A stretch of DNA of 33,170 bases from NCBI RefSeq assembly GCF_041956535.1, contig NW_027192207.1, forward strand, positions 30,310-63,479, given 5' to 3'. The position numbers were made by a program, and so were the translations under genes. Below are positions 1,897 through 33,170 of the stretch, one piece after another. The notes beneath the pieces were generated by a model. The model was not told the origin of the DNA and made no database searches. It was given only the letters and a program-made list of their open reading frames with translations. This stretch comes from Calcarisporiella thermophila CBS 279.70 (taxonomy: Eukaryota; Fungi; Calcarisporiellomycota). Every line of letters begins with the position of its first letter. Position 1 is the stretch's first letter.

Positions 1897-3330
1897 TCAA
1901 GTATCTTCTTGGTCAACTAGTTTTCTAAGCTCCTTGATTCGGTTTACCAAGTCGGGGCGCTCTCGTGGAGGCGGCTCGAATGGCCACTCGTCAGAAATTG
2001 AAATAGCCGTAGCGTCGCTGCCCTCCTTCTCTCCAACCAACGAATCAACGGATTTCCCATCTTCCTCCTCGTACTTCTCCTCTTCTTGTTGCGGGTGATG
2101 CTCTCGTAGAAATGGTGATGACTGCTTTGGCTGCCACTGGCCAAAAGGATGGTGGGGAGGCTTTTTTGCATAGGTTGCAACAATATCTATATACACACGA
2201 TGCGTCTCCAACTCATGCGCTATGCGTGTTTCAAGCTGATCATAGTCTTCGGGATCAAGAACCATCACTTGAGTTAAAAATGGGCGCAAAGAGCGAACAA
2301 GCTGAATCCAATTGTCTTGGCCGAGTTTGCCTATCCGACCCGCATATTTGCCCATGGGAAACGGCACCGAGGTCACCTGCACGTCCTCAAGACCGATCTC
2401 ATTAAAATGATTCCCAATCTTATGTACCCAGCTAGGATCATTGCACCGAGCACGCATCGAGTTATACACTAAAAAAAAAAGCTCGGGGATGTGAGAATGA
2501 AAGTCGCAGAGAAAATAGAAGATGAATGGTCACTCACATCCGTCTGCAATTTTCCGAAAAGCAGGACCACCGCCTTGTATAGCATAGTCTGGGGATAGTT
2601 GCCAACATCAGCACTCAATTGCTCGTACTGGGTAGGAATATCCTCTTGCTTACCTGCTTCCACTATCTCTAAGTAACCTTCCGGCTTCAACACCCTAAGA
2701 ATTTCTTGGATAAGTCCCGGCCACTCAGTACTCACGAGGCCAAATTGAACGCAGCGAAGATAAATGAAATCAAACGTGTCATTTTCGAAGGGAAGACCCT
2801 TCAAAAAGTTTGCAAGTTGAAATTGGCAGTTCTTTGGGGTGATTTGGTGTGGGAATATTGAACTCATATCAATTCCAACAAAATGGCTATTTGGAAATGT
2901 AGTGGCCATTTCCAACGTCCAAGTGCCGGGGCCGCACCTAACCGTGACGAAAGAATGTAAAATAAGTCAGAGTTGAAAAACCAAGGCGTGAAAGTCTGAC
3001 ACTCACCCAACATCCAAGACTATGCACCCCCTCTCCAATCTCTGGCGAATGGGTGAGAGGAAGTCAGCGCCAGCGAATAAGGAGCTTTCATAGAGGAGCG
3101 TAGTAAGAGGCAGCGCGGTTAGTCAAGAAACATTTAGCATTCAAAGCAAGGAGAAGGATTCACCGGAAGGCATAGTGTCGCATAATCAAACGATCCGATT
3201 CGGCATCGTCGTTTGGTAACAGGTAACGAGCACCTAGAGGGAAGAGAGGATTGAGTCGAGAAGCAACTATGGGGATGGTTCGCGAACAGTACCTTGTTCA
3301 TCGCAAAATCGCCTTCCCAACACCCACTTA
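1897..3330 (-). other. LaeA-like SAM-dependent methyltransferase domain of the fusion gene
   Basis: It shows the F.W..GRRF N-terminal motif, YLLPNDD.E.DRL...HY, SAM-binding motif I VLDVGCGPGTW, FVGID, LPFENDTFDFI and RVLKPEGYLEIVE, followed by an acidic low-complexity tail. Confidence 0.92.
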
Positions 3331-4532
3331 AACTTGACGTTGTCCAGCTGCCAATCTGACGGGGTATTCGGTGAATGCTCACGGAGGTTTGCCTCTACCC
3401 CCAGTGAATAGGCTTGCAGTAATTGAGGCTGTTGCCTCGAACCCCTGCCCAATTCGCACCCACCAAGCGACTCCGGCCTACTTCCGCTAGCCATAGAGTG
3501 ATTTTCCTGGCACAACGACAGTGGAACCTCCTCCAAGGTCTTGGAAAACTCCTCGCCAGGCCGTTTCCAAAACCGAAAATCCGATGCTGTCTGGGTATCG
3601 CCACTCTCCAGCCGAGTCGTGTGAAGTCGGCGATGATGGCGTGATTTTGAAAACAGCGGCCACCACGGTACGTGCGCTAGAGCACGGTGAAGCGCGGGGT
3701 TCAACAAGAACACGATCAGGTTGAGCACTCCAATCAGCCCCACCAAGACGGCGTCCACCTTGACGAGCTCTCTTAGAATGGGTGAGCGTGACTCGCTGGT
3801 GACGGTGTAGAGCCAGTCCGCCACAAGGCCTGTGGGTTGAGTCACGATGAGAACAAGCGGGTACAATACGATACGCAACACGGAGTTAATCAAGGCGCGC
3901 TCCTTGATGCGCAATGCCTCGGTTACGTCCCGCGCGGTTTGCAAGCGTCGCGTTTCGCTTAGCACCCGCACTAGCACCAACACAACTACGAACATTGAGT
4001 AGAGGATAGCCGCCGCCACCCACACAGACACGCCAAGGGCCATGTTGAGAATCCCATCACGGCGACTCCATCCTGGGACAATCGTCTCCCATTCCTTCCG
4101 GTAGGAGACGTCGGGATACACCAGCCACTCGATATTGGCAAGAAAGGCGATCATGAAAGCCACCGGCACATAGCACCTCTGGATCTTTTCCAGCTTGGTG
4201 CGCCTGTGGATAAACGACAGCTGGAGATCCAACGCGATGCAAAACGAAAGCAATGCGGACCAGACCTTCAGGAACTGGCCGGAAAAGCCCAGCATTCGAA
4301 CAAACCAGTGCTGCTTTCCAGAGAACGGATCCATCACCTCGTCGGAATGAACAAGGATGTATTCAATACGCCACAGCATGTCGACTAGGCCGATCCAAAA
4401 GGAGATTCGGAAAGAGATGCTGTTGATGACCTCCGGCAGCAACCTCTGGAAATACCCCACCATACCCATCATTAGCAGGCCGCTGAATGCAGAGAGGCCG
4501 TTGATAGCGACGTCGATAGCTGGGATTAACAT
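1897..4532 (-). CDS. Predicted 764-aa fusion: N-terminal 7TM GPCR-like (cAMP-receptor/Git3-like) domain plus C-terminal LaeA-like class I SAM-dependent methyltransferase
   Basis: Exons are 4532-3293, 3233-3164, 3084-3007, 2937-2654, 2588-2538 and 2468-1897 (2295 nt, 765 codons with stop). All five introns are GT-AG (59, 79, 69, 65, 69 nt) and phase-consistent. The spliced product runs ...GVLNLIVFLLNPA...KFKWVLGRRFCDEQG|ARYLLPNDDAESDRLIMRHYAFR|SLFAGADFLSP...IVLDVG|CGPGTWTLEMA...LPFENDTFDFIY...RVLKPEGYLEIVEA|DYAIQGGGP... Confidence 0.8.
3690..4532 (-). other. Seven-transmembrane GPCR-like domain (cAMP receptor-like/Git3-like) of the fusion gene
   Basis: Seven hydrophobic segments, with motifs ISFRISFWIGLVD (TM2), FCIALDLQLSF (TM3), LRIVLYPLVLIVTQ (TM6) and GVLNLIVFLLNP (TM7). 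These resemble fungal/Dictyostelium CAR-like receptors. Confidence 0.78.
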
Positions 4533-6559: not shown

Positions 6560-9500
6560 CTAATATCCAAATGCTTTTCGAATCTCCTCGGACTGCTTCT
6601 TTTGTCGCTGTTCACGCTCCTTGTCCTCTCTATCCTTCTTTGCTATTAGAGCGGGGGAAAAAAAAAAAGGAGAAATGAATTAGTCACCACCACTTGCAGA
6701 TCCAAATGTCAGAAATAAACGAAAGAGAAGCATTCACTTACTCTGCCAAGAGAGAAGGGCTTTCAGGGGGTCATAACTTTTCTTCTTTCGGTCCTTGCTG
6801 GACAAGGCCATTCGTATTGTGGGCGATTTTCTCGCTGTCTCCTCGTCCTCACTGCTATCCTCCTCGTCAGAGCTTGACGAAGGTTCGCTCAGGGTCTCGT
6901 CTTCATCCTCCATTTCTTCCTCTATGGTATCCGTCTTGCTCGTCTCCAATATCTCGCTGCTTAACCCCTTCTGTGGTTGCTGTTGTTGAATGCGAGAACA
7001 AGAAATGCTAGAGGCCGCCGGGACGGCGGGAATGACCCTAAAGCCTCCGCGGGCCATCATATCGGAGAGCGACACTCGTTTACTCTTGTAGTTGCTCAAA
7101 GGATTCATCACAAGAGGGAGATCCCGTGGAGTGGCCAACGTCGATTTAGGGGTGTCCAGCCTATTGAAGGAAAATCCATTGGGCATCTTTGGGGCCTTAT
7201 TAGCGGGCTGCTGAGACGCTCTAATATCCATTTCAATCTTAAGCAACTCCTCCACGTCGCTGCCCCCTTCATCGTCGGAATCCGATTCTGAGGAGGAGGA
7301 AACAGCCGAAGCATGCGCGTTGGGGAGTGTTGGGGATTTGGTGGCTGTGTCAGTTCGAGAAGACAAGTTGGAAACGGAGGAGCTATTACTCTCCTCATTT
7401 TTCGATTCCAGAAGCGAACGAGCTGGGGAGGAGGCGGAGATCGTTGATGTTGCAGCGGAAGCAGGGGATGACTTGGGCACGAGTTTGGAAGGAATCACCT
7501 CAGGAGGCATTAATGGATCCGGCTTGCGATCGTCAAGATCTTCATCTCCTTCAAATTCGGAGTCGGTCGCATCACTGGAAGAGTCGTCATCAAGCCTCAA
7601 GACCACTGGGCTATCTTCAGCCCGAGGTGCAGCAGCTGGAGGCCGGGCGTTAGCTTCCGATTCTGGATTAGAAGTCTGTGCAGCTGGTGGCGGTATATCG
7701 GTCGAGCTGGTGGGCGCAGAAACGGCCGCCACCGGAGTTGATTTTAATGCATCCACCTTCCCATCGCCCTCCTCCTCTGCATCCGAATCTGAATCAGTAA
7801 CGGTGCCCGATGAGGACGACTCATCTGTGTCGCTGCTCTCCGAGGAAGTAGAGGATGTGCTCCCCGTATCCGTGGCTTGCTTGGTCACCGGAGAAGCATC
7901 TACCAGAGGCAAGGATTTAGGCGGCCGAGCGGGCTGATCCACCTCGGATTCCGTATCTGAGGAAGTTTCTGATTCCGATAATGCAGAGTGCCCTGTGGCA
8001 AGGTAGGGAACGGCTGTGGGCAGTAGAGAAGCGATGGATGAGGCGGTATTATGGGAATTCGTTGTGGGCGCATTAGACTTGATATTTACAGCGGTATTTT
8101 CCCCCCATGCTCCCTCCATTTTCTCCTCTTCGTCACTTTCGGACTCTGTCTCTGTTTCCGTCCCTGATTCGTCAGAGCTCGAAGACGCGGTTTCTGTTGC
8201 CTCGCTCGAGCTCGACTTACTGGTATCGGGTATCGAACTCTTCTGGGTCATCACAGGAGATAAGGATGGGCTTTTGGTGTTGAAAGATAGAAGAGTTGGA
8301 CCGTTTTCTGTTTTCGTGGGGCTGGCTTGCTTAGGAGAAGAGAAGGCCACTCTTCTTCTCTTGGCCGAGTTTGCGTCCGAGTCGGTGGAGCTGCTTTCCT
8401 CTTCGGAGCTTTCTCGAAATACCTTTCGCTTCTTATTCTGTTGCTGCTGATTAGGGTTTGGAGAGGTAGGCGAAGTTAGGGACTGGGTGGATGTTTGGAG
8501 AGTGGGCTGCGTAGTAGAAACAGGTTGAGAAAGGGGTTGCAAAGAGGGTGTCTTCGCAGGAGCGGATGCGGATTCCGACGCTTGCTTGTGTTCTGCTCTG
8601 GACATGGTGGTTCCCTTTGGCGGAGGCTTGTTCAAACTGTGATTTTCGGCAGAAATACTTGAGGTAGAGGAGGCCATGAAGCTTAGAGTTGGAGCGGTAG
8701 TATCCTTCGGCCTAGGGGATTCGTTCGTCGAAATATCACCCGCAAGCATAGGTTTAGCCGGAGTGCCTGCAGGCGAACTGTTAGCCGGTGAAGCTTCCCC
8801 GGCGGATAGCCCCAATTCAGCTGTCTTTTTATTCAATTTCCTCCGTCTTCGGTTCTATCATAACACAAAACGGAGAAAAACGCTTGTCACCAAATTATTT
8901 ACGTGAAGAACAATTCAAAAAACAATTACTCGAGTCTTCAAATTAGCTTGATCACTCTGCCCCGACTGAGGTACACTGTCTTTTGATTCCTGTTGGTGGG
9001 ATGATTAGTACCGAAAAACTTGAGCATTTCCGAGGATTGCATAGGCATAAAGTCAAGCAGAGACTTGCCTTATTTCTGACTGGGGTTATAACCTCTGGAG
9101 CAGCCACCTTTGCTCGCTTATACTCGATAGGCTGGGTGGGAGTCTATTAGATCCATTAAGAGGCGATTAATAGCTACAACGCGTCAAATTAGAATCTAAC
9201 TATTACCTCTGCATCGGATTGAGTAAATGACAACTTTCGTTTTCGCGTTGAAGGTTTCTCTGGATGCCGTTGGAAAATGGCCAATTCAACCAAGGGTGAA
9301 TAATTGGGATGAAAACAAGACTAAAATCAACGTTTGAACTTAACGCACCTATATCTGGTGACCATTCCAAGAATGTGGCGCTTGCAAACACCATGCCCCG
9401 ATCGTCGATCAATCGCGAAACCACCCCATCTTCCAAAAAATCAAACCCGAGCTCGTCTGTGATTTTATCGACTGAGATAATTCTGCGCACAAGACAGCCA

Positions 9501-10798: not shown

Positions 10799-12728
10799 AT
10801 GCTAAGCACTCAACCTTCCCGGCTCAACCAGCCTGACTCCCCGCCTTTGACCGAGTGCGATCCGGAGGAATTACTCGATGAGCCCGAGCCTCCCAATTCC
10901 ACTCCAGCCGCGAAGGAATCATCGTCTGCCGACCCTGATGAAGCTTGCAGCGATGACTCGACTCCTCCTGAACCACGTCCCACCATTATAGCAAAACTTT
11001 CCCCAGATGACGCAAGTGATTGGAATTTTATACTTACGAGCGCTGGCCTTCGCTTCCAGCTCCGATTGCGGTCTCTCGGGGATCTGCACCGTCTTTTGAG
11101 CGCTTCTTACATATTTGATAATGCCTCTCTACCCGAATTTCCTCCCACCTTCCCTAGAGACAATGCAGAGTGCAAACCGCTACCGCGGTGTACCATTTTC
11201 AGCTGGCATTTTCCTAAACCCGTTCGACAGGACATGCTCATTCCGGCAGTCAAGAACTATGGCGGATTTACTCGGAGCCTAGTGGATTATTTGTTCCACT
11301 TTTATGTGAGTGGCTGCTTGAATTACTTCCAGCATCCGGATCGCCCAGCTTTCCTTGAGAGCTATTATCGGGGCGAGATCGAGCCAGTTTTGCTCTACAC
11401 CGCCATCACTAGGGCTGCCCTGCACCTCTTGCTGAAGCACATGGATTGCTCGATGTTAAGGCAGATCCAGAATGTGATCGAGCACCTGCTGGTTCGGGCA
11501 ATAACCTTGCTTGAGGAAGCATTCGACTCGCCGTCTCCGCAATCTGTGCTCGCCTTCTTAAACATGAGCTGCTGTATGCGGCGAATGTATCAGCTTGAAA
11601 AAGCATACACGTATCATAAACAGGCGGTGTTGATGGCTCTCGCGTTGAGGATGAACCAGGATGACCCGAGTGAACGGGATTCGATGAGGATTGAATTGCA
11701 GAGACGAATATGGTCAGTCCTTTTTTATTTGCATCTCTTAAAGCTCCGTTTGAGCTTACACCATGTTTCCCATTGGAATTTCAGGTGTTTCCTCTGTAAA
11801 AATGAATTGCTGAATTCGGGCGTCTACGGAAGACCCTGGATCCTGACTTTGGAGACCATTCGCAACTCGCCCAAAGTAACTTTGGGCCCCTGTGATACCA
11901 ATGAGTACCGGCTGTTTTTGGCAAGCATGATTCTCTTGAGATCACTTGGGTGTGAAATAGACTAACCTCTTTTTCCACGCTATGCCAGATCTCATTCGAG
12001 CTTGATATTGCATATCATACTAAACTCGCAAGATTCTCCAACATTGACTGGTCCCAACCCGACCAAGCGATTGTCCGGAATCTTGTGAGTATTGCTGCGC
12101 TTTTACAACACGATGTCCATGTCAACCTCGGGTATATTCTTGGAGTCGTGACAAGCATCCACCAAAAACACATGATCAACATCAAGCATGACTTCTGGAT
12201 CAACTGGTGCTATCTGTGGCAGCAATTTATCGAATCGGATGCCCCCCCAAGACGCATGGGGTCGGAGTTGATGCAGCAACTAAGAGCCAAGGCATTGGAC
12301 GAGTATCTCAAGGTTGGCTTAAGCCCTCTTTCATCCCCGGTATTCTATCGTGGGCTTCTAATCGAAACTCTCGCTCTTTACTTTCCACATACCAGGGAGT
12401 AACCAATGTGACCTCATGCTGGCGAACCGCTCTCCGAGACAGGGCGGGATGCAGTAAATATTTACCGAGCCACAACTTCTGCCATATGTACAAATTTATC
12501 GCAAGTCACCATCCAAATCGGACGATCCGACGACACATTTTTGGCCAGCTTGGCCAGATCTTTCGACTATTGAAGTCAGACCAAAGCCCTGCGACCCTGG
12601 GGGTAAAGCTGCAGATACACGAGGTAGTCAAGGCTCTGGAGGAGATGAAGCCATTCGTGTTCACGGAGCAAGAGCTGGAGATGATGAAGGGACCCAAATT
12701 GAAGCCAATTGCCATCCGACATAGGTAA
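10799..12728 (+). CDS. Fungal-specific transcription factor domain protein (Fungal_trans / Zn-cluster middle homology region); spliced
   Basis: LVDYLFHFY...FQHPDRPAFLESY...LLYTAI...SVLAFLNM...AYTYHKQAVLMALALRM....E.QRRIW|CFL is a typical middle homology region. There is an in-frame intron at 11713-11784 and further introns near 11950-11990 and 12312-12395. The start is uncertain and no intact Zn2Cys6 motif was found. Confidence 0.8.
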
Positions 12729-14501: not shown

Positions 14502-15653
14502 ATGTTGGAGAGCTTCCGCACCGTCTGCTTGATACCCCATGGAGCCGACCTTTACAAATTCTCGCCTGGTCAGCCGATTAAAGGGCTGCTCTCCAACTCT
14601 ACATTAGACAGTATCATACTTCCTCCCTCCTCACTCGGTTTTCAATGTGCTACAGCGGATATAGATGGTCGGCCTACTGTTCTTTTCGTCACTTTTGTGA
14701 ATAATCGGTATAGTCGTGAAGTACCCAATATTGCGCAACTTAATCTCTATGATCTATCGCGGGGTACGCTTGGCAGTATGACTATCGAGCTTCCAATTGT
14801 GCGCCGTTATGGCGAATTTAAGCAATCGGCCATTATTGCAGACAAAAAATACGTCTATATCTCTACCGATGATTCCGGCATTTATCGTATTGATTTGGCG
14901 ACTATCAAAGAAGGGGCTCACATTACTGGTTCTCTCATTATAAGCGGTTTCCCCGGATCACAGCTATTGCTCTTAGACGGCTCCTTATGGAGCATTTCAA
15001 CTACTCGTTACAGTCGCACTCTCTTTCCGGTAAAAAGTGGTGATTTTTATGATAATGGCATCAACATCAGGTCGAACCAGCGTTGTACTGAGGGAACGAA
15101 TCTTGTTGCGGCTAACATTGACGATCGATCCCTGTATGTGTTCACAAATGCTGGATCCGATTTTATTATTACGGCAGAAATGAATTCAGTTAATTCCGTT
15201 TCTGCCACCAACAATGACTTCCTGATGACCTGTTCAGACATGCTAGGGGTGGCTGTGTTTAATGGTTCCGCGTATGTTCTTGCTAAGAGCCACACAGACG
15301 GTGCGGATCGCTTGTTCAAGCGGAGTTTGATCGCAAGCGCAACAGAGGGATGGGCCCATCTGTATGGTGCACCTGTGCCTGTCAAAGATATGCAATTTGG
15401 CTTGCGTCTGTCCCCTTCAGACACTCTTGATGATGTAATTTACCGTGGTCTTTCGGAGGGCGTCTTAATTGGAGGTTGTGTGGCTGCTTTTATGGCTGGG
15501 GCTCTCTTTACGTTCTTCATCACCTTCTTCATAATGCGTCGAAAGATCCGCAATCATACCGTCGTGGCTGTTCCAACTCCGGTAGAGACGGTGGAATATC
15601 ATCCACCTAACGTGTTCCCAGTTTCGAAACCACAGTCGGATGAGAAAGTCTAG
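14502..15653 (+). CDS. Hypothetical single-pass membrane protein (beta-rich ectodomain, C-terminal TM helix, short cytoplasmic tail)
   Basis: A 383-aa uninterrupted ORF behind a pyrimidine-rich leader. It has short beta-strand-like segments (KKYVYIST, GIYRIDL, RSLYVF, SAYVLA) and a TM helix GVLIGGCVAAFMAGALFTFFITFFIM followed by RRK. Confidence 0.75.
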   Translation: MLESFRTVCLIPHGADLYKFSPGQPIKGLLSNSTLDSIILPPSSLGFQCATADIDGRPTVLFVTFVNNRYSREVPNIAQLNLYDLSRGTLGSMTIELPIVRRYGEFKQSAIIADKKYVYISTDDSGIYRIDLATIKEGAHITGSLIISGFPGSQLLLLDGSLWSISTTRYSRTLFPVKSGDFYDNGINIRSNQRCTEGTNLVAANIDDRSLYVFTNAGSDFIITAEMNSVNSVSATNNDFLMTCSDMLGVAVFNGSAYVLAKSHTDGADRLFKRSLIASATEGWAHLYGAPVPVKDMQFGLRLSPSDTLDDVIYRGLSEGVLIGGCVAAFMAGALFTFFITFFIMRRKIRNHTVVAVPTPVETVEYHPPNVFPVSKPQSDEKV

Positions 15654-18173: not shown

Positions 18174-19507
18174 ATGAATTCGATTTTTCCATACGCCCAT
18201 CCCCCCTTGTATTTCAGTACTCTTAGAATCAATCTCCTCGACATCTCGAACGATATCCTATCACCTGCTCTCATTCTTTTCTATGGCCTCATTATAGCCT
18301 CGCTCTATGCCATTCTCATGGTGCCTGTCTGGCTCCTGCATGCTCGCGTCAAACAGGCGCTTGGAGGAATGCTCATGTGCGTGCAATTATCCATTCCATT
18401 TCTTCTCACCTCTAATCACACATGTAAGTCTCAGTTAGCTCCATTAATTATATTGCCCCAGCACCTTTTTAATTGAATTTCATTATGCTAGTGCTCTTAC
18501 TAGGAATCGGTGCATTCGGGATTGGGCAATTCTATCGCTTTATCGACCTTTACTACTTCACGCCCGCTTTTCAGTCACGCCCTATCTACTACACGCGTCA
18601 TGAGCTGCGGGAAGAGGTCCTTAAATTCTTTCGCAGAAGAAATAGGTACCGCACCCTTCCCAAACAACCCAGTCAGTCTCCTCACCAGCTTGAGAAAGAG
18701 GGGCAGCGGGAAACCACATGGCTAGACTTGCTTCCTCGGTTTTTCTTCCACTACGTGACCGCCGACCTGTTGCGCTTCTACTTCCGCGGATATACATATG
18801 AGCACTACCACGCGCTCGGCTACGATTCCCCTTGGTTATGGTATCGCCTCTTTGGCGTCGCCTGTATGTTGTGTGTCGCGTTAAATCTTATGTGGTTCAT
18901 CGAGCTTCTTCAAATATTCACGAGCGTCATCTTTAACAAGGGCAAGATCAATCTAACCCACTATCCGGCGCTATTTAAGTCGCCTTGGTGCGCCAGTAGC
19001 TTGGGGGAGTTTTGGGGAGATAGATGGCACCAGTGCTTCCACCATTGCTTCACCGGAGTGGGTTGGCATCCTCTGCGACGCTTGATCAAGGAACACCTGC
19101 TTCCGCAATTCCCAAAAAACAAGCTCGTAGCCACGCTGGAGCTGTTCCTCCCCATGATCGGAGTGTTTTTGGCAAGCGGCTTGATGCACGAATATATCAC
19201 TTTAATCCTCCCTCATGCGCGAAGCCCCTTTTCCATGGTTGCGTTCTTTTTACTGCAAGGAATGCTTGCGGCCGTTGAGCGGCTTTTCAGTTGGATCTTT
19301 CCGGTGCACTGGAGGGCTTCTCGGATAGGCAGGGTCCTCGGCTGGGCATGGACAATGGGATCCATCTACGTGACTGCTCCCCTCTTTTTTGAGTTTTTCG
19401 CCAGGCTGGAAATGTGGAATGTGCTTGGGACGCAGCCCGGTATCTACACATGGTTGGATGCTAGACTGGCCAACCGAACAATATCTCTCGGTGCCAAGGC
19501 ACTCTGA
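18174..19507 (+). CDS. Membrane-bound O-acyltransferase, MBOAT_2 / wax synthase-like (421 aa)
   Basis: Exons 18174-18423 and 18492-19507 (GTAAGT...TAG intron). Motifs are PALFKSPWCASSLGEFWGDRWHQ and VFLASGLMHEY (catalytic His), with multiple TM segments. Confidence 0.92.
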
Positions 19508-25601: not shown

Positions 25602-28600
25602 ATGACAACGGCGCCATGTGGAGTTATGACCGTCTCTGATCTCTTCTTATTAAATCATTCACTATCTTCCCATGAGGCTACATCTCACATTCTTGTTGGT
25701 CACCTAGTAATTGCCACTTCCCCCCAGGAGACTTCCTACTCACGAGGCACCTTAGTGTTCCAGGACGATACAGGGGAGGTCGCGTGTAAGATAAAAAAAT
25801 TTAATCGATACTGGACGAAGTACCGGGTTCGTTTGAAAGCGTGGCATTATGTGCACAATGGTGCGCTGGGGAGTGACAAAAAGAGAATTCCGAAAAATTA
25901 TCTAGAAATTTGGGAAGATCCGGAGATTGTGGGCAATCATCACGAGAATAATCCAACTTCACGTAATGCTGACAGTATGGGACTCTATCTTGTTCCGAGA
26001 TTATTGAGCAAAGAGCTCCTAGAGCAATATCACCCATGTACTCTTTCTGAGCTTGAAAAACTAGAGATCGTGCATAGGAATGAAGCGGCAATTACGGTGT
26101 GCACTCGTGTGAAAGCAAAAAGTGTGCTTCATATTCCCTCGAGTCAAACTGCCTCTTTCTTTCTCGAGCTTGAACTCTTTCTCTCTGACCTCACCAGCGA
26201 ACAGAATAATGCCTACATGATCTTTGAAGGCGATGATCTTATTCCTCTTCACGACGAAATATGCGTTGGACAGCCATACATTTTTACAAAAATACACATA
26301 GCATGGAGCAATAAGTCACAAGAAAAGGTTCTGGTTTTCGGAAGTAACGAATCCACTATAATCCCAGTTACATCTTCAGATAAAACTACTAATCCATCGC
26401 GGCTTTCAGGGCTAACGCCACCATGTCAGCTACGACACCAGAATATTGTGATCAACTATACAGGGAGACTGACGCGGATCCTCGATGCACTCTTAGGCCT
26501 CTTTGTGCTTGATAACCGGTTCATCCTTTCCCTTAGCCATCATTTCGACTACAATCCCGAGCAGCCCTTCCGCGAAGGGACTACCCTACGATTATGCAAC
26601 GTACACCTTATTTTGCTGGAAAATGCTGAAAAAATATGGAAAGACATTGTGGAAGATCTAGAAGGGATGGCTGAAAATATTGTTGCACTTGTTGGATGTA
26701 CTTATTCGACCATAGAGATCACAGAGTTTTCAACGGCCCACAATCCTTTTTATAAGAGTATAACTTTTGGTGCTCCAGGACTAGACGAGAACAATTCAAG
26801 TTCAGTAATGAGCAATGCGCTTTTTGCATTACGCAGCAAAGTAACTGCTGTTAAACTCCTACGTATCATTGAACTCTTCTATCTATTCCGCCGAAAATTC
26901 ACCTTTTCTGAGAACGGCATGCTAATTCCAGAGAAGGCCCTGGTGATGGAGCGACAGAATAGCAGAGGTGTACTTTCTGAACTATTGCAAAATCTTGAAG
27001 GAGAATTAGGACTCCAAGATGTCTATGGTGATTTCTTTAATCATACGCAAGGTTGTTCGATCATCGGGATACTGCCGGATTGTGCTAAAACTGAAAGCAA
27101 GGAATGGCGATTTCCAGTGCTGAGTGAGATCGCAGCCCATTTACAAGAACTTGTCTGCCTTCGCACGCCTTCCTCTCCTCCGTCGGTGCAATCGACCACT
27201 ATGTATCGCTGTGAAGTATTGTCCGCACACGAAACTGGGCTTGAACGGACTGCGTTTTTAGGAATTTTGCGAGGTGCAACAGATGCCTCAGGGAGTTTGG
27301 AATTGGTAGATGCGAGTGGGAGTATTCGTCTGGTTCCAAACTCGGCTTCCCCCTTATTTTCTCCCTATTCATCGAAAAGGAAGCGCAACGAAAAGGTGCG
27401 GGAGGTTGACTGCTATATGTTGGGACATGTATGGATGATTCCAGCATACGAGATTGTAGTGGAATGGCTCGGATCTTCTGAAAGAGAAGATGTATCAATG
27501 AAGGATCCAGACGAGGTGTCAAAACCAGAAGAAAACCTTGTGTACAAGGTATATATGAGGTTTGATGTGAGCCAGGCGGTATGCGTATATCGGCTTCCCA
27601 TTCCAAACCCCTGGATGCCGCTTCTTGGTACTGGCGATAGGGATGCGCGGAATGTATTGTTTCTAGCAAGGCACGCGCATACACCTAGACTCGAGCACAC
27701 GATCAAGGATGCTGAGGTTCGCTGTCTCGTCGAAGGCATTGGGTTCGATATGGTCTCGCGTGAATCCAATCGAGGCGGGAAGGAACACGCGATGGTTACT
27801 AAAGAAAAAAATATGATGTTAGAACTGGACGGTGCGAGCATGCAGTTGCTAGCGGGAATACGAGTGGGGGGAGCTTATCGAATTTGTGTTTCAGCGAGTA
27901 ACCCGACGCGGGGCTCGAGAGGGAAAAGAGAAGATTCTTCCAAAATGGCTCAGGAGACCGAGACCATATTCTCTGCTCATATACTTGCCTTCGAGCAAAT
28001 TTCCCTTCCCTTTACTGCAGAATATCATCCCACAATTCGCGATCTTATTCTTCAAAAAATCGCTGCAACTCGATTGCGCCTGGATACTGCCTCCTGGTCT
28101 TTCATCGCAAAATCGCTGCAAACTCTGCAGAAGACGATGCAGTCTGTGTGTTTTTCTGCCGATGCTGTGGTGCCTCCTCCGCCTAACGAGTTGCCTTTGG
28201 CGACGGGGTATCTGAAAAAGCTTATCAATGTGCAGGGGATTGTCTTGGCCAAAGAGATCCGTGAGATCAAATCTCGATGGTGGGAAACGCGCACTCACGC
28301 GGCTTCACGTGCCTTTCTCCAACACGGAGCTGGATGCGGAGGTCCTGGTCGGGTGCTGATCGTCAAAATTGGTGATGTGCCTGGGAGTGAGGGGGTAGAA
28401 GTGCGGATGGACTTGGGGCGCGGTGGGTATCCCCTGGGAGTGACTCCGGGCTGTCTTGTCACCTTTTGGCGGATTGGGCGCAGGATGGAAAGTGCAAGGA
28501 ATCGCATCTGGTGTTCTTGGTTGGCGTGCTCCTCTATTGCTGTAGAGTCCTCGAAACTAGACGAAGAGGTTTCGGGGGTAGGCAGTAGCTTGTGTTCGCG

Positions 28601-29360
28601 TCGGGTTTTCCTGGCTGAACTGCTCCAATACAACCGTCCACCTTCCACCCCCTCCGTTTCATCTGAGATTATCGAAGCCCATATCTCGATAATACAAGTA
28701 CTAGATGCCATTTTTGCTCGCGTTTGCTCCTCTTGCAAAAGTGTCTTGCTCCCCTTTGGGTTATGCAGACGCGGATGCACACGACCCAAATCACATTTCC
28801 TGGCTCGCATGAAAGCCGTGGTCACAGATGGAACGGGTGAGGGCTTGGCCCTTGTCGAGGGCGAAGAGTTGGTGTCACGAATGCTGGCCTTGACGACTAA
28901 AGATGTAGAGAAAGTACAAAGCGAAGCGGTGGCGAAGGGGAGAATAAAATTCTGGAGGGGCAGTATGCTGAAAAGCTCCACGACGGTGGCCGTTGGTAAT
29001 GAGGGGGTAGATTCCGGTGAAGAAGCTGGAGAAACCTCGGAGGAAGAGGGGCAGGCGACCTTGAGCGATAAGGGCCCCAATTCCTTACTAACCAAGATAT
29101 GCACTCGACCGCGTATACAGCGCCGAATGATCGTGGTTGCGCATCCATGGTTCACGCAGACCAAGCCTAATCCCATTCTTGAGACCATAGATGTTACTTT
29201 GTCAAAATATCACTGCATACGGGAGTTAAGCACTAAACCTCCCACACGTTTCAAGACTCTGATGCACAGTCGCCTTCAGCTTCAAATTATACGTGTGGAG
29301 GAAGCAAATGCAGGAGCTGAGGCAGCACGATTAATAGATGAGTTGTCGTCGATGCGCTAA
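25602..29360 (+). CDS. CTC1: CST complex subunit CTC1 (multi-OB-fold telomere/ssDNA-binding protein), 1252 aa, single exon
   Basis: OB-fold signatures appear in CTC1-like order: GTLVFQDDTG, YTGRLTRILDALLGLFVLD, LRLCNVH, GSLELVDASGSIRL, YPLGVTPGCLVTF, a Zn-ribbon CSSC...C...C, and VVTDGTGEG. The length matches animal/plant CTC1. Confidence 0.85.
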   Translation: MTTAPCGVMTVSDLFLLNHSLSSHEATSHILVGHLVIATSPQETSYSRGTLVFQDDTGEVACKIKKFNRYWTKYRVRLKAWHYVHNGALGSDKKRIPKNYLEIWEDPEIVGNHHENNPTSRNADSMGLYLVPRLLSKELLEQYHPCTLSELEKLEIVHRNEAAITVCTRVKAKSVLHIPSSQTASFFLELELFLSDLTSEQNNAYMIFEGDDLIPLHDEICVGQPYIFTKIHIAWSNKSQEKVLVFGSNESTIIPVTSSDKTTNPSRLSGLTPPCQLRHQNIVINYTGRLTRILDALLGLFVLDNRFILSLSHHFDYNPEQPFREGTTLRLCNVHLILLENAEKIWKDIVEDLEGMAENIVALVGCTYSTIEITEFSTAHNPFYKSITFGAPGLDENNSSSVMSNALFALRSKVTAVKLLRIIELFYLFRRKFTFSENGMLIPEKALVMERQNSRGVLSELLQNLEGELGLQDVYGDFFNHTQGCSIIGILPDCAKTESKEWRFPVLSEIAAHLQELVCLRTPSSPPSVQSTTMYRCEVLSAHETGLERTAFLGILRGATDASGSLELVDASGSIRLVPNSASPLFSPYSSKRKRNEKVREVDCYMLGHVWMIPAYEIVVEWLGSSEREDVSMKDPDEVSKPEENLVYKVYMRFDVSQAVCVYRLPIPNPWMPLLGTGDRDARNVLFLARHAHTPRLEHTIKDAEVRCLVEGIGFDMVSRESNRGGKEHAMVTKEKNMMLELDGASMQLLAGIRVGGAYRICVSASNPTRGSRGKREDSSKMAQETETIFSAHILAFEQISLPFTAEYHPTIRDLILQKIAATRLRLDTASWSFIAKSLQTLQKTMQSVCFSADAVVPPPPNELPLATGYLKKLINVQGIVLAKEIREIKSRWWETRTHAASRAFLQHGAGCGGPGRVLIVKIGDVPGSEGVEVRMDLGRGGYPLGVTPGCLVTFWRIGRRMESARNRIWCSWLACSSIAVESSKLDEEVSGVGSSLCSRRVFLAELLQYNRPPSTPSVSSEIIEAHISIIQVLDAIFARVCSSCKSVLLPFGLCRRGCTRPKSHFLARMKAVVTDGTGEGLALVEGEELVSRMLALTTKDVEKVQSEAVAKGRIKFWRGSMLKSSTTVAVGNEGVDSGEEAGETSEEEGQATLSDKGPNSLLTKICTRPRIQRRMIVVAHPWFTQTKPNPILETIDVTLSKYHCIRELSTKPPTRFKTLMHSRLQLQIIRVEEANAGAEAARLIDELSSMR

Positions 29361-31507: not shown

Positions 31508-33170
31508 TTATTTTTCTTTTTCGGTGATAGCCTGTTCTCCCAGTTCTTTTCCACCCGACAGAGCTGCTTTTATATCCTCGGGCTTCTCGGAGAATCCTTT
31601 CTCGAGATTCACCTCTGGCCCTTCTCCGAGTCTCTCACGTTCCTCAATCTCCTTCCGTATGATTCGCATATTGGTCATCTGGGAGTGAGCCGTCAAGACA
31701 CTGTCATACCGCAACCCTGCCTGAATCTTGCCTGTGTCAAGCGGGGTCAACACCTTCCGCTTTCCGAACTTGTAGAGTTCAGAAAGCACCACGAAGAGAA
31801 TAGAAGTTCCAAGAATGATGCCCCATTCGGGTCCAGTGAGGGCGCTATGACGGAAAACCTCGGTATTGACTCCGGGAATATATACAATGGGGAAAATAAG
31901 CAAGAATCCAATGATAATGCTGTATGTGAGGAATTTGTTGGTGCGATACATGTTCATCAACCGAGCAGGTGTCCACTCGGAATCCCGCAAACTGCGGCAG
32001 GTAACTGCATGCAAAAGGAACATGATGACCGACGTGACGAAACCGGCTCCACGAGCCTGATAGAGATTTTCGCAGCCTTCGTGTAAGTGGTGGTTGCAAT
32101 CGGTACCGCTGACTCCATTTCCGAATCCGTAGAGAACAATCATGAAGTTGCCAAGAGCGAAAATTCCCATCAGAAAACCATACAAGAGGATATCGACAAT
32201 GACCTCCTTGGTGAAGATTCCTTGCTTTCGCGGACGAGGTGGGCGGCGCATATTCCCAGCGCTTGGGGGCTCCACACCAAGTCCCATGGCGCAGGGTGAG
32301 GAGGTCACCATGTTAAGGAAAAGAATCTGAAGCGGGGACATAGGGAAAATAGAGGTGGACGTCGAGTCCTTCACGGCGAGCCCACATACCAGCACCACCA
32401 CTTCGGCCACATTTGCGCACATCAAGTGGCTACAAAATTTCTGAATATTGGCAAAGATGCGGCGCCCTTCAGCGACAGCACGCACAATGGTGGCGAAATT
32501 ATCATCTGTCAACACGATATCCGATGCCTGCTTTGCAACGTCTGATCCGCCCTGGCCCATCGCAATTCCGACATCGGACTTCTTCAGAGAGGGTGAGTCA
32601 TTCACACCATCTCCTGTCATAGCAGCAAATTTCTTTCGGCGATGGAGAGCATCAATCATCCTGACTTTCGTTTCAGGGGAACACCGTGCGATAACACGCG
32701 GCAATTCCTCTAGACCATCGATCTGCTCCTCGGTGAGTGCTTCAAATTCAGATGCAGTCATGACTAGAGGGTTGTTCTGAACCGGAATATCGGCGGGTAA
32801 AATCCCTACTTCGCGAGCAATGGCCGCAGCTGTCGATGGGTGATCCCCGGTCAGCATGTGGACCGTGATGCCCGCCTCATAGCACTCGAGCACAGCTGGA
32901 CGCGATTCGGGGCGTGGGGGGTCATAAATTCCAACCAACCCAAGGAATGAGAGTTGGCTTTCAACCTCATCGCGCGAAAGGTTAGAGAATGTGGCCTCGG
33001 CTTCGTCCTTTGCATCGAATCGGCGATAGGCAAGAGTGAGGACGCGGAGACCCTTCGTGGCTAGGAATTTCACCCGAGGCATCACCATCTCCGTAAGTTC
33101 GTCGCTGTTGCCCTCGCATCGATCCAAGATACGTTCGGTGGCACCCTTGGAGAACACAAAGTACTCGCCG
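31508..33170 (-). CDS. ENA1: ENA-type (P2D) Na+/K+-exporting P-type ATPase, 3' portion; the gene starts beyond the right edge
   Basis: KGATE, GLRVL, DPPR, MLTGDH and TGDGVNDSPSLK (the last two in their ENA-typical form), plus SDIVLTDDNF and M5-M10 helices. Stop at 31508. Confidence 0.95.
   Translation of the reverse strand, partial: GEYFVFSKGATERILDRCEGNSDELTEMVMPRVKFLATKGLRVLTLAYRRFDAKDEAEATFSNLSRDEVESQLSFLGLVGIYDPPRPESRPAVLECYEAGITVHMLTGDHPSTAAAIAREVGILPADIPVQNNPLVMTASEFEALTEEQIDGLEELPRVIARCSPETKVRMIDALHRRKKFAAMTGDGVNDSPSLKKSDVGIAMGQGGSDVAKQASDIVLTDDNFATIVRAVAEGRRIFANIQKFCSHLMCANVAEVVVLVCGLAVKDSTSTSIFPMSPLQILFLNMVTSSPCAMGLGVEPPSAGNMRRPPRPRKQGIFTKEVIVDILLYGFLMGIFALGNFMIVLYGFGNGVSGTDCNHHLHEGCENLYQARGAGFVTSVIMFLLHAVTCRSLRDSEWTPARLMNMYRTNKFLTYSIIIGFLLIFPIVYIPGVNTEVFRHSALTGPEWGIILGTSILFVVLSELYKFGKRKVLTPLDTGKIQAGLRYDSVLTAHSQMTNMRIIRKEIEERERLGEGPEVNLEKGFSEKPEDIKAALSGGKELGEQAITEKEK

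Follow-up and report, generated by a model that had tools for sequence, protein, structure and literature searches.

The stretch of DNA analysed here (33,170 nucleotides, the window), from the early-diverging fungus Calcarisporiella thermophila, carries on its minus strand a gene of six exons and five introns, checked exon by exon, in which a GPCR-type receptor runs in frame into a methyltransferase. Its parts are as follows.

4532-3293, minus strand: exon 1, with the ATG at 4532; receptor head, linker and start of the methyltransferase domain
3669-4532, minus strand: GPCR-type 7TM head, amino acids 1-288, intronless; Git3/Gpr1/cAMP-receptor-like group
3327-3701, minus strand: helix 8 and cytoplasmic linker, 125 amino acids from the NP of TM7 to a conserved W; in frame, with one Met (ATG 3494)
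3293-3347, minus strand: KW..GRRF hairpin, the methyltransferase start, inside the receptor's exon; a motif common to free methyltransferases
3234-3292, minus strand: intron 1, 59 nt, GT..AG, phase 1
3164-3233, minus strand: exon 2, with the Y.LPND..E.DRL motif
3007-3084, minus strand: exon 3, with SAM motif I (VLDV) at its end
2654-2937, minus strand: exon 4, class I SAM methyltransferase core; Pfam Methyltransf_25, E 3.6e-14
2538-2588, minus strand: exon 5, from the exon-by-exon check; segment 47-75% identical in sister loci
1897-2468, minus strand: exon 6, remainder of the methyltransferase and an acidic tail; stop at 1897

The introns measure 59, 79, 69, 65 and 69 nt, are all of the GT..AG type and lie in phases 1, 2, 2, 1 and 1, leaving a coding length of 2295 nt (764 amino acids plus the stop) that is free of internal stops. 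The initial annotation had proposed the phase-1 intron at 3292-3234 and four further phase-consistent introns that rebuild a 764-amino-acid protein with a SAM-binding domain; both proposals were borne out by exon-by-exon translation, and every exon's translation is contained, in order, in the public C. thermophila protein P0001 (764 amino acids, VTP21DRAFT_3239). According to the paper that lists this genome, the genomes of its group were annotated with SnowyOwl, with transcriptomes used when available (PMC11393059); we count the public model as another prediction of the fused frame and not as proof from transcripts. At the level of DNA, we consider the predicted single GPCR-methyltransferase gene to be confirmed. 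The linker was expected to be open and rich in Ser, Thr and Arg: the frame is indeed open past TM7 for 125 amino acids, but its composition is S/L/R/E-rich more than T-rich. Elsewhere in the window, Pfam families identify a Fungal_trans transcription factor (10799-11965, plus strand), an MBOAT_2 acyltransferase (18473-19507, plus strand), CTC1 (25602-29360, plus strand) and a cation P-type ATPase (31508-33157, minus strand), and nothing ties these neighbours to the fusion gene. Two further long frames, at 6734-8836 on the minus strand (700 amino acids) and 14502-15653 on the plus strand (383 amino acids), have no Pfam family at cut-off.

The seven-transmembrane topology expected for the head agrees with seven hydrophobic windows in the sequence and with seven helices in an AF2 model (pLDDT 93.9, pTM 0.91), which also contains an ECL2 hairpin and helix 8 and places the predicted helices in the GPCR arrangement. 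The top 50 structural matches of the head (Foldseek, VIA) were all GPCR-fold chains, with Z up to 22.6, and its closest ESM Atlas clusters were fungal GPCRs of the Git3/Dicty_CAR type (score 0.94-0.97). Its odd number of helices, together with GPCR topology, would place the enzyme on the cytoplasmic side, in support of what had been proposed from the sequence. A domain search met expectation for the enzyme, with Methyltransf_23/25 families over cut-off, but not for the receptor: the window protein matched neither Dicty_CAR nor Git3, nor GPR_Gpa2_C, the Pfam families that mark fungal classes III and V, and a search with the first ~290 amino acids returned no GPCR family over cut-off. As Pfam alone does not identify the head as a GPCR, this assignment relies on fold and embedding evidence. 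Among 66 relatives of the head, two match Dicty_CAR and two match GPR_Gpa2_C. Thus the head resembles the Git3/Gpr1 and cAMP-receptor-like fungal GPCRs (classes III and V) in fold, in its long TM5-TM6 and in its nearest embedding clusters, but differs from them in falling below every Pfam cut-off and in carrying an enzyme. The C. thermophila genome contains several dozen receptors of one family that Pfam fails to pick up, and ~15 G-alpha loci.

The second half has the features of a class I SAM methyltransferase, with the seven-strand fold, motif I (D.G.G.G) and an acidic residue after strand 2. Motif I is intact across exons 3 and 4, and exon 4 exceeds the Pfam cut-off not only for Methyltransf_25 but also for Methyltransf_31, _11 and _23. 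In a model of the enzyme of a sister locus (P0005) the domain is complete (pLDDT 90), and the KW..GRRF beta-hairpin, its first element, is confidently placed; this element is coded by the last part of the receptor exon. The solved structure nearest to this model is 3mgg, an uncharacterised archaeal enzyme (Z 23.2), and other near structures are small-molecule N- and S-methyltransferases; these modelled neighbours do not settle the type of substrate, which we would guess to be a membrane-near protein, with a small molecule also conceivable. The nearest relatives by sequence are unnamed Mucoromycota methyltransferases (28-35% identity), and 'LaeA-like' denotes a resemblance in motif and fold. 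The N-terminal motif GRRF..Y.LPND..E.DRL..H is one that we take to be typical of the LaeA/Llm/VipC group, with which the class I SAM motif is also in common. LaeA itself is soluble and nuclear, whereas the fused form is predicted to be membrane-bound. The C. thermophila genome has more than a dozen velvet-domain loci.

The joined gene is not alone. Among the dozens of related receptors and ~30 related enzyme loci of this genome, at least 11 sister loci show the exon set of the window gene immediately preceded by a receptor; of these 11, seven have no visible break and four carry a frameshift, stop or deletion. For some of the sister loci the public model is truncated or divided (P0051, P0131 and P0132). 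An artefact of assembly or prediction, or chance read-through, might be suspected for an architecture known from one assembly of one species; we give this next to no credence, as twelve diverged fused loci on seven contigs have the same junction, and these paralogues exclude misassembly and chance read-through. Frames of a retroelement that looks DIRS-like, one gag-like and one a reverse transcriptase with YLDD, lie between two of the receptor-methyltransferase loci (L062:2650-4409, contig C10 ~861150-862900, plus strand).

The linkers of the sister loci are likewise open, in all nine that were scored, and span 117-129 amino acids (each P<=0.013 by shuffle); the window linker stays open in 0.5% of shuffles, and the other two frames contain stops in the window copy and in the nine sisters. 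In 10 of 10 loci scored, the phase-1 donor of intron 1 lies at one and the same distance from the W codon, +34 nt. Values of dN/dS were ~0.24-0.41 for the sister linkers and ~0.25 for the head, and exon 4 showed dN of 0.19-0.34 with saturated dS, so that purifying selection is shown on both halves of the gene and on the sister linkers. Open, length-conserved and selected linkers that share the same donor indicate that the join is selected and is not read-through. These data also bear on whether the locus makes two products, a plain GPCR (if intron 1 is retained or polyadenylation comes early) and a free enzyme that begins at an internal start, with the fusion minor or absent. Separate products would be possible for the window copy, because its linker holds the in-frame ATG 3494 and a transcript keeping intron 1 would end after 8 codons; intron 1 contains a stop in 10 of 10 loci. 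Short introns contain stops by default, however, and we rejected the intron-1 stop as a designed switch: it is present in all copies, yet expected. Three sister linkers, two of them in unbroken genes, have no Met at all, so that there the enzyme cannot start alone with its N-terminal motif. As the enzyme's first hairpin lies inside the receptor exon and the linker is open, length-conserved and under purifying selection, we regard the two-product explanation as improbable.

The two halves of the gene tell different histories. In the enzyme tree, all fused copies and one free copy (P0130) form one clade (99/99), whereas in the receptor tree monophyly of the fused heads is rejected (AU p 1e-50), as read from trees built quickly from concatenated exon blocks in which the tested groups were named after a first tree. 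A single fusion followed by plain vertical descent is therefore rejected for the heads. The window head nests among intronless unfused receptors, at 58% identity to the nearest, and stands apart from the heads of the other fusions, which carry introns. Its linker, by contrast, is homologous to the sister fused linkers (16 bits, a score reached in 0 of 2000 shuffles; 10.9 bits when only the main clade is compared), and no unfused receptor tail scored against it in this test. A foreign head clade combined with the linker and enzyme of the fused clade points to head swapping near helix 8. The same pattern is seen elsewhere in the family: two unfused receptors match the heads of the fused genes next to them at 82% and 88% identity, whereas in the tail the identity is 14% and 20%, their tails match each other and that of a third unfused gene at 44-49%, and monophyly of the unfused members of such pairs is rejected; in this comparison some unfused receptor loci are represented by database proteins only or not at all. 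The simplest reading of these sequences is that a new head may have acquired the linker-plus-enzyme module behind helix 8. Many separate enzyme losses, or repeated fusion from a free donor, are possible. The free enzyme P0130 is sister to the enzyme of the window copy and retains an MGxxxS start, which makes the history reticulate. A GC seam was also considered as proof of chimerism and set aside as weak, since the head has GC3 of 0.72 and exon 4 of 0.46 but heads range from 0.38 to 0.84 across the family.

The MGxxxS start is of further relevance to the origin of the enzyme. It is the N-myristoylation consensus, and it occurs in the enzyme's frame in six of the seven free paralogues examined compared with 0 of 122 receptor matches; Rhizopus and Spinellus relatives of the enzyme also start with MGxxxS. 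The free methyltransferase loci with paralogues examined for this start include L057, L058, L060, L061 and L064. Our literature search found no link between MGxxxS or myristoylation and LaeA-like enzymes. To judge from this consensus, free members of the enzyme family are probably myristoylated, and their starts suggest that the ancestral enzyme was probably membrane-anchored and that the receptor replaced the lipid anchor.

Two elements recur in the linkers of the main clade. A basic motif of the RVxF type, which would be of the phosphatase-docking type, lies at linker position 65-70 in eight of eight copies, which are related and hence not independent, and a Ser-rich block follows helix 8 in all copies (L046, L048, L049, L050, L052, L053, L054 and L056); both are absent from the linkers of the window copy and of the copy on contig C15. 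A long, exposed linker bearing the basic motif would suit a receptor that holds the enzyme until cleavage or internalisation frees it for action in the nucleus, as VapA does with VipC-VapB in Aspergillus (PMC4299510), and the many velvet-domain loci are in keeping with such a release. VapA-VipC-VapB is a precedent for membrane tethering of LaeA-like enzymes, but the VapA tether is non-covalent (PMC4299510, PMC13006574). Release nevertheless seems rather unlikely here: no conserved cleavage site was seen across the linkers, the window copy lacks the RVxF-type motif, and the free relatives seem to have a permanent lipid anchor.

Outside C. thermophila, Mucoromycota and Zoopagomycota have related receptors and related enzymes as separate genes. 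Searches with the window gene took one exon at a time; those for the whole architecture used P0005, the database protein of another locus. Fused homologues in other species were found neither among 125 receptor matches in the word-limited search of a 50% library, nor in a word-limited search of a 90% library with P0005 and an alignment, nor among Atlas clusters (a cluster-limited search), and none occurred in 17 short metagenome loci. A database protein, P0066 of Entrophospora sp. SA101 (L066:3001-7573), combines a related 7TM head with an AMP-binding enzyme in 796 amino acids; it is probably a merged gene model, because the receptor frame does not end at the predicted donor, the two parts are joined across an intron of more than 1 kb and its 557-amino-acid sisters are unfused. 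The receptor-methyltransferase architecture is apparently limited to one lineage, so far one species.

With a GPCR domain and a catalytic accessory domain in one frame, the window gene is at the DNA level a GPCR-bigram. It shares the N-terminal GPCR and C-terminal cytoplasmic catalytic domain of the oomycete and amoebozoan bigrams (GPCR-PIPK, -INPP, -AC, -PDE and -TKL; PMC6033456, PMC5784254), which are likewise multi-copy, occur beside free enzymes and plain receptors, and have a mode of action that is still open. However, the partner here is a class I methyltransferase and not a PIPK, INPP, AC, PDE, TKL or aspartic protease, none of the six described bigram types has a methyltransferase (PMC6033456, PMC5784254), the host is a fungus, the occurrence is apparently confined to one lineage, and fused and unfused genes seem to have traded heads. 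Fungal 7TM-RGS proteins of class VI such as GprK also carry a signalling domain after TM7 (PMC13308352), but RGS is a GAP, whereas the partner in the window gene is a group-transfer enzyme; the review of that class does not mention a methyltransferase fusion (PMC13308352). Similar in layout is NHMT (AN4663), a fungal protein with a 7TM domain ahead of a soluble class I methyltransferase (PMC10349129). NHMT has a 7TM domain without GPCR-like structural match and a spermidine-synthase-like enzyme, and is single-copy, ER-resident and limited to Pezizomycotina (PMC10349129); in contrast, the window head has a GPCR fold, its enzyme is of the Methyltransf_23/25 fungal type, and the gene has no spermidine synthase Pfam match. 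Fungal and holozoan GPCR surveys do not mention a GPCR-methyltransferase fusion and our search, of incomplete coverage, gave no literature match, in line with the initial annotation, which knew of no such architecture. The receptor-enzyme architecture is real and selected, and apparently undescribed.

How such a protein may work is a separate question, and we infer every step beyond the architecture. By a somewhat better than even judgement, we favour an enzyme tethered beside its receptor and regulated through G-protein engagement, linker phosphorylation or trafficking. The fusion would have exchanged the enzyme's lipid anchor for a receptor, so that the enzyme is held next to one receptor and its G protein, and ligand binding would set the place and time of its action. 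This regulation would most likely be indirect, by the three routes just named, and not by rigid allostery, which is disfavoured because the 110-amino-acid linker is variable. Recombination near helix 8 would have passed the linker-plus-enzyme module between heads, giving different inputs to the same output. The fuller proposition, that ligand binding controls the covalently attached methyltransferase and that such recombination plugs the same module into different heads, is tentative and somewhat doubtful. It is also conceivable that this is a true one-component system in which ligand moves TM5, TM6 and helix 8 and switches the enzyme directly without G proteins, corresponding to Model A of the GPCR-bigram review (PMC6033456). 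A linker that is under purifying selection and kept within 117-129 amino acids across copies with 30-40% identical heads suggests such a geometric constraint. On the other hand, linker sequence shows little conservation among the main clade, the window copy and the C15 copy, fused genes and ordinary unfused receptors have interchangeable heads, full-length P0005 as modelled in the Atlas (pTM 0.52) gives no sign of a fixed interface, and direct transfer has been called unprecedented (PMC6033456); we hold direct switching to be unlikely. The long, fast-evolving linker and the myristoylation-type start of the free relatives fit tethering with receptor-local regulation better than rigid one-component allostery. 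The initial annotation, which had suggested direct gating by an external ligand or freeing of the enzyme by receptor cleavage or internalisation, is supported in part, for the fusion and for the cytoplasmic side of the enzyme.

In summary, GPCR-enzyme fusions are known, but in the literature examined we found none with a methyltransferase, nor one with any catalytic type in fungi. The fusion would tie membrane sensing to methylation. What LaeA-type enzymes act on is a question of long standing (PMC13006574), and an enzyme fixed to its receptor says where to seek their substrates, among membrane-near signalling proteins. In addition, the fused family allows proximity labelling and receptor-swap experiments, and its natural head swaps bear on the question of whether receptors gate bigram enzymes. 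If the module proves to be ligand-controlled and swappable, it would link a GPCR directly to methylation, as a first case of its kind, and would offer a way to find the substrates of LaeA-type enzymes.
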